Shown piece after piece: positions 34,430 to 62,516 of a DNA stretch of 64,000 nucleotides (its first letter is position 1; every line of letters starts with the position of its first letter). The stretch is from Lepidodermella squamata (Eukaryota; Animalia; Gastrotricha). The stretch covers positions 806,001-870,000 of the forward strand of contig JBLDXI010000002.1 of assembly GCA_047495785.1 (NCBI GenBank), read 5' to 3'. Below the pieces are notes generated by a model that had not been told where the DNA came from, did not search any database, and saw only the letters and a list, made by a program, of their open reading frames with translations. A program made the translations under genes and the position numbers.

Positions 34430-35626
34430 TTATTCGGCAGTATCAGAATCACTAGCCGTTGCGTCATGATCTTCATCCTGGTCCTGTTCACTCATCGACG
34501 TCTCCATTTTAGGCGACTCGTTTACTAAAGGTTTCTCGATTAAAGCCGAATGAAGAATCTCATCCAAGTGTTGAATCACCATTTTAACCGCCTCGGGCTC
34601 TTGTTGCGGCTTGACCGAAAGAAACTTCGCAATAGGAGGGCGAAGGTCGAGTTGCATTAGCTCCTCATCGTTTAAAGCTTGATAAGGCGCACAGGTGCAT
34701 CGAGGAATCCAGTGAACTGCTGTCAGAGGCCAAGTTTGAATTCCTTGTTTCTGGCTAAGCCATGCATGGGCCTCGGCTACAACGCGGTTGATAGTATCCG
34801 CATCAAAGCTCTTCACTTCATTTCGGAACTTCTCCAGATCACAGAGGGCTTTGAACATCGCAATTTCATCTTCAATGCCCAACTTTTCTTTGAAAGAACG
34901 ATGAGCCGCAGCGGCTAGTTTTGATTGGAATGTTTCAGGGCAAGCAGTTCTCGGCTCGAATTCCTTGACGAAAGACTTGAGCTTCTCCTCGTCTTCCGTT
35001 GACAACTTGCCCAGGGCGCGATGGGTGACAATTCTGGCGCAATGAGCTGCGTTTGACATGAAAATTCCGCACAGCTTCTGCGCCTCTCTCGTGTCGTAAT
35101 TCTCGGTTTTAAGGACAGGCGGTAACACTTGACCAGCCTCGCGTTGGAAAAACGCCTTAACCTCATCGAAAAGCCGATTCCTGGAATCAGACGCCGGCTT
35201 CTGCAGCAGCTGGTCAGACGATGACGTGCGTTTCGTCATGTTGATAGGCTGGATGTTGAGCATTGAAGGCTGTCGCTTCTCGCGCATACCGGCTTTGATA
35301 CACTGCTCGAAACGGCACTTCCGGCAACATTTTCGCCACACCTGGCCGCTTATGGTGAAGCTTGACTGAACAGAGGCGTTACACATGCTTTCGTCGTGTT
35401 CCAAAGCGTTCTGCGAGGCAACTTGCCGCAGGTAGAACCGCTTACAGGCCTCGCAGGCCATAACTCCACAGCGCTTCTTGCCATCAGTTTCCGTGAAACA
35501 GACCTGAAAAAAATGATGAAAGAATAATTGATTTGTTATGCCTGGTATCTAAGCAAGTACCTGGCACAATGATCTGCCGATATTTCCAGGATTAGGGCTG
35601 AATTCAGCGAAATTGTTGCCTGCCAT
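34430..35626 (-). CDS. Divergent nuclear-receptor-type zinc-finger protein; exons 35626-35561, 35503-34430
   Basis: CQ|VC...GVMACEACKRFYLR...C...RKCCRKCRFEQCIKAGM. Helical C-terminal region with no clear canonical LBD signature. Confidence 0.8.
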
Positions 35627-57495: not shown

Positions 57496-58302
57496 ATGAA
57501 AGTTTTTATTAGACATATCAATGGGAAGGAGGACACGTTGGAAGTTGAACTATCGTACACAATCGGCAAAGTGAAGCATATTGTCCAAGATGTAGACGGT
57601 ATACCACCAGACCAGCAAAGGATACTATTCGTTGGGAAAGAACTTGAAGACGAACTGACATTAGAACAATGCAACATCCAAGAGGAGAGCACACTGTTCT
57701 TAGTAGTGCGAATGACTGGTGGTGGGACCACGGCGTTCTTTCGTGGCGATTGTGCTGTTTTTACTTCAAATGGGCCCCCGAGACATAGAATTGAAATTGC
57801 CGTCGAAAAGTTTCACGTTTCCTGTAAATCAGACAAATTGATTTACGGCGAAAACTTTGCTGGCATGATGCTGCTCATGTACAACGGTCAAACAGATTGG
57901 CGTTTGAACGGCGTTCACTGTAAGGCTGGTTATATTTATTTGAGGAAATCGTCATCGATTATGTCCATCGACGCCGCAGAGGGTCAAATTCATGGGAAGC
58001 TCTACAAATCGCTGTTCGGCGTTGAACTCGACGATAAAATCGTGGGTGCTGGTTTCTCGTTTCAGCGCAACAAACTTGTCTGGAATTCGGCTACACTGAA
58101 TACACGCGAGGACGGTTTCCACGATGATCAGAGAGCCATGTCAGAAGTTGAAATGAGATGCGTCTTAATGGCACTGAAGCACTGGAAGAAGTCTGGATTT
58201 GAACGTCAGAACTGGACTGTTGCCGGCTCGAACGTCGAAAATTACACGTCGGATGAATTGCAACAACAGTTGCTGGATTCTTTTACATGCAACCTGATCT
58301 AA
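57496..58302 (+). CDS. Ubiquitin-like domain fused to an uncharacterised 192-aa domain
   Basis: Residues 1-76 are ubiquitin-like ([41 protein letters not shown]), with di-Gly at 75-76; intronless. Confidence 0.85.
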
Positions 58303-59496: not shown

Positions 59497-60333
59497 CCGT
59501 AAACTGCAGTATAAAGGCCGCGGCGACTAATTTTCCTGATTTTTGAAAAAGACGCAAAAAGTGCGGCGATTATTTGAGTGCGGCCATTATTCGAGTGCGG
59601 TCTTTATTTCCCTCAATTTTTCAAAACTTGAGTTGTAGCAGGCGTAACAGGTGCAACAAGGGGCTTGCGCCGCCAATTCACGCGCGGCTCTTCGGATAAT
59701 CCGCCTCCTCGACGTCACTCCCTTGTGAGTAGGGAGTAGGTCGGCGTAGCGGTAGGAGTCGCAGTGGGGGTGCCATCTGGCGATTCGCCTGGGTGGCTGT
59801 TGATCACGTGCTTATGTGCGGCGATTATTCGCGCGCGGCCTTTATTTATGCTGAATTGATGAAAATAGAGCTATTTTGCCGGGGTCCCCAACAGAGTAAA
59901 AGGCTTTAAAGCAGTATAAACCCAAAAAGCGGTGCAAACGCCACGCAACAATAAATCGAATTAATTACGATAAAATTCTGCGTAATTTTCTGCATTTGGA
60001 CTCATCGTAACTTTAAGAGCCCGGCTGATGGATTTTGAAAAATTTTCAAAAACGACTTTTTCGACCAAATTGAGGTCTGAGCAAATTGACCAAATTTTGG
60101 TGTGGAAAGCTAAAATAGCAGACCATCATATTAGTCCATTGGTTGAAAATCCGAGGCTAAGCCTGGGCGCCTACTGGGAAGACTATTTAGTGCGTTTACC
60201 CTGCTTTGAAGCCTTCTGCTTCGTAGGGGACCCTTTTGCGGCGATTATTCAGATGCGGTCTTTATTCAGGATGCGGTCTTTATTCAGGATGCGGTCTTTA
60301 TTCAGGATGCGGCCTTTATGCTGTAGTTTACGG
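59497..60333. mobile_element. Non-autonomous pogo/Tc1-like element
   Basis: TA|CCGTAAACTGCAGTATAAAGGCCGC...GCGGCCTTTATGCTGTAGTTTACGG|TA; 18-bp subterminal repeats GCGGTCTTTATTCAGGAT. Confidence 0.85.
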
Positions 60334-60665
60334 TAAGTAGCTATGGGGCCTTCGCTTTCAGGTGCGATTTGTTACCGGGATGCCTCATCAGAAATCTGAA
60401 ACAGTACGAAAGCAAAAATTCATCATTTAACTGCATTATTTATTCACGCGGCAAGGCGACAGGGATGACAAAAAGAAGCGTTTGATTCCATGATTGCAAG
60501 GAGAAAAGTTTCACTTTTTCCAGCAATAATTGAGTATGAACAATAAAAAGGATTATGATTTATGAGAGGAATTAGGGTTTAAAGAATAAAAATATCTCGG
60601 GCGAAAGCACATAATACAAGTCTCTTCCCTTGTAATGTAAACAGAGCAGCCATCGCTGAAATTAT

Positions 60666-61733
60666 TCAAGCCTGCTCATAGGCGGCTTCACCACGTTTGG
60701 CCTCTTCGTAGCCAGCTTCACCACGCTTGGCCTCTTCGTAGGCGGCTTCACCACGCTTGGCCTCTTCGTAGGCGGCTTCACCACGCTTGGCCTCTTCGTA
60801 GCCAGCTTCACCACGCTTGGCCTCTTCGTAGCCAGCTTCACTACGCTTGGCCTCCTCGTAGGCAGCTTCACCACGCTTGGCCTCTTCGTAGCCAGCTTCC
60901 CTGCGCTTGGCCTCTTCGTAGCCAGCTTCACCGCGCTTGGCCTCTTCGTAGCCAGCTTCACCACGCTTGGCCTCTTCGTAGCCAGCTTCACCACGCTTGG
61001 CCTCTTCGTAGGCGGCTTCACCACGCTTGGCCTCTTCGTAGCCAGCTTCACCACGCTTGGCCTCTTCGTAGCCAGCTTCCCCGCGCTTGGCTTCTTCGTA
61101 GCCAGCTTCACCGCGCTTTGCCTCTTCGTAGCCAGCTTCACGGCGCTTGGCTTCCTCGTAGGCGGCTTCACCACGCTTGGCTTCCTCGTAACCAGCTTCC
61201 CCGCGCTTGGCTTCTTCGTAGCCAGCTTCACCGCGCTTTGCCTCTTCGTAGCCAGCTTCACCGCGCTTGGCTTCCTCGTAGGCGGCTTCACCACGCTTGG
61301 CTTCCTCGTAACCAGCTTCCCTGCGCTTTGCCTCTTCGTAGCCAGCTTCACCGCGCTTGGCTTCCTCGTAGGCAGCTTCACGGCGCTTGGCTTCCTCGTA
61401 GGCGGCTTCACCACGCTTGGCTTCCTCGTAACCAGCTTCCCTGCGCTTTGCCTCTTCGTAGCCAGCTTCACCGCGCTTGGCTTCCTCGTAGGCAGCTTCA
61501 CCACGTTTGGCCTCGTCGTAGGCAGCTTCACCACGCTTGGCCTCTTCGTAGCCAGCTTCCCCGCGCTTGGCTTCTTCGTAGGCGCTCTCACGCCTCATGG
61601 TCTCCCCAAGCGGATTCGAAAGGACCACTGCTACCTAGTTTCAAAACAAATGTGTCATGCCATTAGTTATATGATATGCACATCGGTTGCAGAAACTCAC
61701 CAGGCATGCTGCTATCGTTAGCTTGCAGATCAT
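60666..61733 (-). CDS. Secreted multi-copy prepropeptide (333 aa); exons 61733-61701, 61634-60666
   Basis: A 66-bp phase-0 intron gives signal peptide MICKLTIAACLVAVVLS, pro-segment ending in RR, then 30-bp repeats encoding (G/R)EA(G/A)YEEAKR. Confidence 0.85.
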
Positions 61734-62516
61734 AATTCGGCTTGAATAAAATGGCTGATAAAATATTCGAAAAAGGAAATTTTGATGAAACGTTGGTATT
61801 CAATGAAGATTGAAATTTTCACCTTTTCAGCTATGGTTTTATAGGCGAGCGATCGTTAGTTGCGCTAGATGAATTGTCTATTATGCTTGCGATCCAGGGT
61901 TGCTGTTAGTCATGGCACATCTCCAAGCAAGTTCAGCTGTCATTTCTATCTCACGTGTCAGCCGCAAAAAACCTATTTTAGCATCATAAAATTAACAATA
62001 ATATTTGAATAATTATGAATAGAATATAATCGCGTATTATTTTCTTTAGCGATGAAATTTTATTCCACACCGGCATTTTCATTTGTCGTTAATTCAACTA
62101 GGCTGGCATTTCCTTCTATGAAAGCTTCCTTACGCGAAGCTGATTTTCCCTACAGGATTGCATTCAGAGATCTTTCATTTTTACCGATCGCTGTCATTTC
62201 ATTTGTCTTCAATAATTTGTAAAAAGTCGCGTTCCGACGCAAAAATGATCCATTGTTATGGGCGCGGCTAATAGTTTCATGTCGATCAAGTCGAAATTGA
62301 GGTTTTTAAGTTACGAACGGCCCCCCTCACCGATCGATATCAAAATCAATTTCTTATTTGGGGGAATTTTCTAACAAATATCTCCATATGTTTCACAGGG
62401 ATGAAAATCCCTATTTCCAAACGTCGGAAAAGTGAAGAAAGTGGGAGGTGAAGGTCGAGTGACATTTTGTAAAACCCCCTAGAGCCAGTGTGTTAAGTCG
62501 ATAGCACAAGATCGTT

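Follow-up and report, generated by a model that had tools for sequence, protein, structure and literature searches.

A 64,000-nucleotide window of the Lepidodermella squamata genome (assembly GCA_047495785.1, contig JBLDXI010000002.1) carries a two-exon gene on its minus strand, at positions 61733-60666, that probably encodes a secreted polyprotein. Judged from its sequence, the product would be cleaved to supply acidic octapeptides in bulk, and a gland is a likelier source of them than neurons. The gene is one of a family in which at least 11 array genes together hold about 270 peptide copies. The design, a multi-copy secretory precursor delimited by dibasic sites, is known; the chemistry of the product and the scale of the family are unusual. 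Our reading and translation of the gene matched exactly the description in an earlier note on the same DNA.

The coordinates of the gene and of the other family members are collected in Table 1. Exon 1 encodes the n-region and the first half of the hydrophobic core of a putative signal peptide. The mean Kyte-Doolittle hydropathy was 2.5 for LTIAACL (residues 5 to 11, exon 1) and 3.64 for VAVVL (exon 2). The hydrophobic segment is preceded by M-I-C-K and followed by SNPLG, and the signal-like segment would be cleaved after ..VLS or ..PLG. The intron contains a branch-like motif, CTAAT, at 61666-61662. Upstream of the TATA box, the block in which CAGCTG is followed by ACCCTGGATCGCAAGCATAATAGACAATT... 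probably acts as the promoter. The intact precursor would have a mass of about 35 kDa and a net charge of about -30.

Table 1. Features of the gene (positions in the window) and members of its family in the assembly (positions on contigs)
Feature	Position	Strand	Details
E-box CAGCTG	61934..61939	-	opens a conserved putative promoter block of about 130 nt (about 61950-61837); aligns in 8 of 9 paralogues
TATA box TATAAAA	61837..61843	-	about 104 nt 5' of the ATG; paralogues keep GCCTATAAAAC
Exon 1, coding part	61701..61733	-	33 nt, 11 codons, MICKLTIAACL; ATG at 61733
Phase-0 intron	61635..61700	-	66 nt, GTGAGT...CTAG; AG at 61636-61635
Exon 2	61634-60666	-	begins VAVVLSNPLGETMRR, then the array, then TGA
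Exon 2 start	61590..61634	-	VAVVL ends the hydrophobic core; the short pro-piece SNPLGETM follows and ends in the first RR site
Peptide array	60669..61589	-	307 codons: ESAYEEA-KR, 29 x [G/R/S]EA[G/A]Y[E/D]EA-KR, GEAAYEQA
Stop TGA	60666..60668	-	directly after the last peptide, no basic tail
Polyadenylation signal AATAAA	60439..60444	-	about 225 nt past the stop; aligned in 9 of 9 paralogues (gaataaataatgcagtta)
Array gene of this window	C2:866.7 kb	-	31 units
Array gene	C2:884 kb		36 units
Array gene	C2:892 kb		48 units
Array gene	C2:986.5 kb		21 units
Array gene	C2:987.4 kb		5 units
Array gene	C2:994.6 kb		13 units, GEAAYEEA and GEENYQEA mixed
Array gene	C54		28 units, GEENYQEA
Array gene	C19:3086 kb		32 units, GEENYQEA
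Array gene	C29		24 units, EAGYEEAQ, RR-delimited
Array gene	C40		9 units, EAGYEEAQ, RR-delimited
Array gene L045	C19:2910 kb (G000:C19:2909300-2911300)	-	18 x YRPREEN[VL]QEA and three 8-mers, all KR-delimited
Short subfamily L035	G000:C2:894800-896800 (C2:895.6 kb)		
Short subfamily L046	G000:C2:923800-925900 (C2:924 kb)		
Short subfamily L047	G000:C24:3304100-3306250 (C24:3306 kb)		

A script that split the array at basic pairs returned 31 units, namely ESAYEEA, 29 ten-residue units, and the terminal GEAAYEQA. The array contained 30 KR sites (five KRR and one KRS) in addition to the initial RR. The main predicted products were GEAGYEEA (14 copies), GEAAYEEA (8 copies), and (R)EAGYEEA (4 copies), while GEAAYDEA, (R)EAAYEEA, SEAGYEEA, ESAYEEA, and GEAAYEQA were each predicted once. 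The residue before each basic pair was always Ala and never Gly, and therefore no amidation signal is present. This recount returned the same number of units, the same KR and KRR sites, and the same main products (GEAGYEEA and GEAAYEEA) as the earlier note had claimed, as well as the absence of Gly before the dibasic sites. The calculated [M-H]- values were 823.31 for GEAGYEEA and 837.33 for GEAAYEEA, with sulfated forms heavier by 79.96 Da. For the other peptides of the family, they were 766.29 (EAGYEEA), 894.35 (EAGYEEAQ), 937.35 (GEENYQEA), and 1388.66 (YRPREENVQEA). At the DNA level, Tandem Repeats Finder reported a period of 30 with 29.9 copies, 88% matches, 0% indels, and a score of 1290. 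There were 17 distinct DNA units among the 29, arranged with block duplications (ABCDEFGDEFDHIFJHAKLKMMNOPKLLQ).

The open frame of the array was uninformative by itself, since the 30-nt repeat leaves three of the six frames open. Variation among the 29 units was therefore compared by codon position, and the minor-allele sums at positions 1, 2, and 3 were 6, 10, and 54 (of 70), respectively. In the proposed frame, the proportions of synonymous (pS) and nonsynonymous (pN) differences were 0.389 and 0.042, giving a pN/pS of 0.108. Because block duplications make the units nonindependent, this ratio and the junction counts given below overstate the number of evolutionary events; the value is descriptive, though the direction it points in is clear. 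The other scorable frames showed pN/pS values of about 3. Nonsynonymous variation was limited to unit positions 1 (G/R/S) and 4 (G/A) and to a single E-to-D change. Because the unit differences fall mostly on third codon positions, and because the paralogues share the start exon, the phase of the intron, the TATA box, the promoter block, and AATAAA, the locus is, on these sequence patterns, a coding gene under strong purifying selection and not a satellite.

A nuclear-receptor zinc finger encoded in the window marks the source as an animal, and a search for the nematode SL1 sequence found none, which speaks against a typical nematode. The paralogues were found by a six-frame search of the animal's own assembly (121.2 Mb, 151 contigs), and nine intact ones were compared. 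The start exon was 33 nt or 30 nt long (11 or 10 codons) and ended at GT in all of them. It encoded M[IM]xKLTIAACL, or MMYKLALTAFL in L008; the start exon of L045, a further member described below, encodes MVFKLMIAACL. The intron was always in phase 0, bounded by GT..AG, 60 to 67 nt long, and at the same place; its sequence had diverged in L005, L007, L008, and L010, though position and phase were kept. Exon 2 opened with [VI]A[AVT]V..NPL, and A2, V4, N7, P8, L9, and R14 were invariant. TATAAAA about 104 nt 5' of the ATG and AATAAA about 225 nt past the stop were common to the nine paralogues, and L008 was the only one without the upstream block starting with CAGCTG. Because L008 and L010 have no exon-2 ATG before the repeats, exon 1 is needed for translation start. 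This conservation supports the gene model of the earlier note, with its 33-nt first exon, 66-nt intron at 61700-61635, and signal-like start.

The upstream region also served as a query. A 217-nt piece of it matched 12 other loci in the genome, every one of which precedes a family member, and this DNA search exposed members overlooked by the protein search. The copy on contig C135 was left out of the family counts as redundant. L004 (G000:C135:3811-7617) and L003 (G000:C2:882653-886459) are reverse complements with 100% identity over 3807 nt, so that the C135 copy looks like an assembly duplicate of part of C2. The full family as defined by its promoter, a variant with 13-residue units, and a short subfamily without dibasic sites are additions of this analysis.

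Across the nine arrays, unit residues E2, Y5, E7, A8, and R10 were invariant. The junctions were dibasic in 228 of 229 cases and fell into the classes KRG (176), QRR (31), KRR (19), KRS (1), KRK (1), and QRG (1). In L006 and L014, the change of K9 to Q was accompanied by R at the next residue, so the basic pair was retained. KRR, which is found in the gene of this window, is a plausible intermediate toward QRR. All nine paralogues ended with ...Y[EQ][EQ]A-stop, exactly at a peptide boundary and with no basic tail. The arrays of L005, L007, and L008, which lie on different contigs, had the same majority peptide, GEENYQEA-KR, with 3 to 4 synonymous differences per 30 nt. L045 showed the promoter, start exon, and intron of the family, but its array consisted of 13-residue units in which KR was kept. 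In these units Tyr had moved to the peptide N terminus, in a basic context, with Val or Leu at its old place; the three 8-mers of this gene were GEEYFQEA, GEENYQEA, and GGENYQEA. The dibasic sites are the most constant feature of the family, which supports the proposed cleavage of the chain.

The genome contains machinery that could perform this cleavage. Ten matches to the convertase domain P_proprotein were found, eight of them with E below 1e-17. A match to 7B2/secretogranin V was also found, and a PC2 system is therefore implied. In the proposed mechanism, the signal peptide would be removed, and a PC2/PC1/3- or Kex2-type convertase of the regulated secretory pathway would then cut the chain after each KR or RR. 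Furin is an unlikely cutter because P4 is Glu or Ala and not Arg. The basic residues would be trimmed by a carboxypeptidase E/D-type enzyme. The output would be about 31 non-amidated octapeptides per chain, mostly GEAGYEEA and GEAAYEEA, each with a net charge of about -3, as the bulk product of a secretory gland-type cell.

The expected site of production was judged from the scale and composition of the family. The codon choice (GCC, AAG, CGT/CGC, TAC, and GGT) went in the same direction as that of actin and was stronger, and the synonymous variants remained preferred codons. This pattern suggests very high expression. Bulk gland secretion is preferred over neuronal signaling because there are roughly 270 copies, because the codon bias is strong, and because the peptide core has diverged while the signal and promoter have been conserved; a gland is moderately favored over a neuronal transmitter of low abundance. 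Exocrine families such as frog-skin peptides, conotoxins, and apidaecins likewise combine repeated peptides that diverge with a signal and promoter that are conserved. As a guess, candidate roles include a defensive, pheromonal, adhesive-release, or anionic granule-packing secretion.

Several points weigh against a cleaved, gland-made product. Besides the nonindependence of units described above, the paired change of K to Q and G to R keeps the net charge too and so is not specific to cleavage, and it counts as one event owing to concerted evolution. AlphaFold2 drew a long single helix, and a helical protein that stays intact would agree with this model just as well. The short genes L035, L046, and L047 keep NY[QH]EA after the loss of dibasic sites, and the Tyr motif may work within an intact chain. 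In addition, we know of no receptor class here for acidic non-amidated octapeptides.

These points lead to the strongest alternative, which we consider unlikely but deserving of serious weight, namely that the chain is secreted uncut as a long flexible or helical polyanion with a net charge of about -30. Its possible roles would be a granule or matrix scaffold, a binder of Ca2+ or other cations, a lubricant or hydration layer, or a component of cuticle, scale, or eggshell cross-linked through Tyr (and Lys). AlphaFold2, run with the nine-sequence alignment on the first 107 residues of exon 2, gave one continuous helix over residues 8 to 106 at moderate confidence (pLDDT 71.7), although it often draws helices for sequences rich in E, A, K, and R. 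The pTM was just 0.34, and one or two Gly per 10 residues speak against a stable helix, as does the net negative charge. Tyr recurs every 10 residues, and such regular spacing resembles that of Tyr-cross-linked elastic and shell proteins (resilin and flatworm eggshell precursors). However, with their high solubility and charge the units differ from the insoluble matrix proteins that are known, and in L045 Tyr-5 is replaced by Val or Leu, yet KR is retained. Lys is also dispensable (none in the arrays of L006 and L014), whereas the basic pair is kept at nearly every junction, and each array terminates precisely at a peptide boundary. With Glu or Ala at P4 of KR, the ubiquitous furin would not cut and a specialized cell type would be needed, which agrees with an intact chain. 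The codon bias would also fit an abundant structural product. If the protein does stay intact, it would simply be an acidic repeat protein restricted to its lineage and only modestly interesting.

The short subfamily, which has Tyr motifs without dibasic sites, is a further observation in line with an uncut chain. L035, L046, and L047 have the family promoter, exon 1, and intron, and their exon 2 encodes just 65 to 78 amino acids. In each, NY[QH]EA occurs three times in degenerate form, dibasic sites are absent, and the C terminus is a common nonrepeat tail (..FV..NF). Their pairwise ratios of nonsynonymous to synonymous substitution rates (dN/dS) were 0.53 to 0.77, thereby indicating that these genes are weakly constrained or decaying. 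L036 (C19:2339 kb) is a separate short member with three units, KR and RR sites kept, and a different ending.

The earlier note had suggested a novel neuropeptide, pheromone, or gland secretion. The precursor-like layout stands, but a classical neuropeptide is disfavored by the scale of the family and its codon bias. Such a precursor would be cleaved in the same way and expressed in neurons or endocrine cells, with the octapeptides acting as transmitters or hormones through a receptor; we regard this as rather improbable. Multi-copy proneuropeptides and prohormones cut at dibasic sites include the FMRFamide type and the Caenorhabditis elegans nlp-14 type, and acidic non-amidated precursors of this kind exist (nlp-14-type precursors and placozoan ELPE). 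The family shares with them the layout of a signal peptide followed by tandem short peptides with KR or RR, and both convertase genes and 7B2, the helper of PC2, are present in the genome. It differs from them in showing no sequence similarity, no spacers, and no amidation signal, in the net charge of -3, and in its amplification to at least 11 genes. The number of genes, the roughly 270 copies, and the extreme codon bias exceed the usual capacity for a signaling peptide. The drift among GEAGYEEA, EAGYEEAQ, GEENYQEA, and YRPREENVQEA would be hard for a single receptor to tolerate, and the peptides are without amidation or another typical protective modification.

A similar design is known from exocrine polyprotein precursors, such as the honeybee apidaecin multipeptide precursor, yeast alpha-factor, and Drosophila Baramicin, whose peptides are released at KR or RR for bulk secretion. 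Like these, the family has many identical peptides bounded by KR or RR, an amplified gene or copy number, and a conserved signal and pro region with variable peptides. The exocrine peptides, for which activities are known, carry positive charge or are hydrophobic, in contrast to the strongly anionic ones of the family; its precursors also lack dipeptidyl (EA/EP) spacers and show no homology. The granins (chromogranin A/B and secretogranins), which travel as cargo in the regulated secretory pathway, are likewise acidic and soluble with many dibasic sites, and sulfated Tyr is a granin feature. However, granins are nonrepetitive vertebrate families whose N and C termini carry defined motifs, and neither Pfam nor HMMER linked them to the family. 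By this analogy, a granin-like role in granule packing or as a counter-ion is conceivable.

The earlier note had recognized a sulfation consensus around Tyr. The genome encodes an orthologue of tyrosylprotein sulfotransferase (TPST): the locus G000:C21:1457473-1458229 matched PF13469, and its first coding piece matched the PDB chains of human TPST1 and TPST2 (E of about 1e-21). A second Sulfotransfer_3 locus (on C42) was rejected, as the PDB search showed that it is not TPST-like. The Hortin/Huttner rules were applied. Tyr has E at -3, +1, and +2 and Gly at -4 and often at -1, in agreement with the rule of at least three acidic residues within -5 to +5 and a turn residue. The rule of an acidic residue at -1 and at most one basic residue within -5 to +5 is contradicted, since G, A, or N occupies position -1 and the interval includes R(-5), K(+4), and R(+5) before processing. 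This rule is not absolute, as CCK demonstrates. In addition, the acidic-context Tyr is lost in L045. The claimed consensus thus holds for the number of acidic residues and fails for position -1, for the nearby basic residues, and for L045. Gastrin/CCK/sulfakinin and the hirudin tail resemble the family in having Tyr flanked by Glu, but the family has no C-terminal amidated pharmacophore, no acidic residue at -1, and three basic residues within 5 positions of Tyr before processing. Taken together, Tyr O-sulfation by the TPST of this genome is possible but not well supported, and we lean slightly toward its absence.

One specific gland role was considered. Gastrotrichs use duo-gland adhesive tubes. 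In the duo-gland adhesion of flatworms, release has been proposed to occur via a small negatively charged factor that is molecularly unidentified (PMC6410801), and gastrotrichs were inferred as the sister group of flatworms in a genome paper (PMC11660948). Like this factor (PMC6410801), the predicted peptides are small and negatively charged, in their case strongly so, and they appear to be a bulk product; the likeness is a functional analogy only. The octapeptides, possibly sulfated, might be a releasing factor in the granules of adhesive-tube glands that competes with a cationic Lys/Arg-rich glue protein and detaches the animal. We consider this quite unlikely. If true, it would account for the polyanionic chemistry, the missing amidation, the very high copy number, the codon bias, and the lineage restriction.

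Least tenable is a nonsecreted origin, either a 30-bp satellite with accidental ORFs (open reading frames) or a cytosolic acidic repeat protein from an internal ATG: three frames are open across the array, an in-frame ATG at 61598 (Met-13 of exon 2) would bypass exon 1, and the public gene-call collection contained no exact match for the product started there or for a neighboring ORF, but the three-periodic variation with its low pN/pS is confined to the proposed frame, all paralogues keep exon 1, the splice sites, the TATA box, and AATAAA, and L008 and L010 have no such ATG ahead of their repeats, which makes this origin highly improbable.

Next, we examined whether relatives of the family exist elsewhere. 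A Pfam scan of exon 2 gave no matches at E<=1, and a word-index protein search gave none for the whole of exon 2 or for its first 80 residues. The best match in the ESM Atlas, a fungal 'WD40' protein with a score of 0.76, was dismissed as noise. An HMMER profile of the nine paralogues gave 560 matches among 1.84 billion representative proteins; among the approximately 20 inspected, there was no true homologue, and all were unrelated period-5 or period-10 repeats. The rejected matches included ETTRPEKTYP and EAGRV (unrelated decapeptide and pentapeptide repeats), GASPYLESKR (within a CNK-like cytoplasmic SAM/PDZ/PH protein), and NDGYHSAKR and SAGYEQAKSR (short metagenome contigs, without a signal peptide). 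The sole match of a degenerate two-unit DNA pattern in JGI metagenomes was a high-GC actinobacterial FHA-type protein with RPEDQYPEAQ repeats, which was attributed to chance. A literature search for the peptide strings in 8.4 million papers found no relevant match, the hits of NYQEAK being limited to unrelated proteomics papers and others. Since tandem repeats assemble poorly from short reads, it is weak evidence that the family is absent from collections derived from transcriptomes. On these searches, the family appears to be genome-specific and without homology to any described family, and it was fair of the earlier note not to recognize it.

The family has implications beyond this locus. 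An apparent 30-bp satellite can be a gene family, and annotation pipelines are likely to mask such families. If the peptides are released, the genome would rank among the animal genomes of its size with the largest peptide-coding capacity for one short motif (about 270 copies in 121 Mb). The chemistry, strongly anionic without amidation and possibly with sulfate, is also unusual for peptides that animals secrete. Gastrotrichs are a phylum with almost no molecular physiology. The family is testable, with known peptide masses, a conserved promoter module, and clustered genes, and the roles that could be tested in meiofauna include gland secretions, temporary adhesion and release, chemical defense, and signaling.

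Other repeat-bearing loci were also recorded in the genome. L037 (G000:C42:486300-488300, minus strand) is a different repeat precursor with two exons, the first of which shows the 11-codon design of the family (MAKLASALAFM followed by ALVAVVAC...). It contains seven full 20-residue units, EAEANL[IM]EAQR[GS]ISGRRPRR. Their RRPRR sites resemble those of furin, and amidated peptides would result from the Gly that precedes RR. This gene may be a distant relative of the family or an analogous gene. L020 (G000:C25:1259293-1262718, minus strand), a 403-amino-acid ORF with about 15 copies of GLRHPDGNPQ followed by hydrophobic segments, was rejected as unrelated, as it shares only the period of 10.

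Within the window, the ORF at 60028-60336 lies just 3' of the poly(A) signal of the gene. It has 102 amino acids and is probably noncoding; its MRSLFR-repeat tail comes from a tandem repeat of period 18 bp (4.2 copies with 96% matches) at 60245-60319 on the plus strand. At 57496-58299 on the plus strand, an intronless 268-amino-acid ORF carries an N-terminal ubiquitin domain (PF00240, E of 2.7e-20) followed by about 190 residues without a Pfam match. A 343-amino-acid ORF at 34433-35461 on the minus strand starts inside a nuclear-receptor C4 zinc finger (PF00105, E of 3.9e-5).

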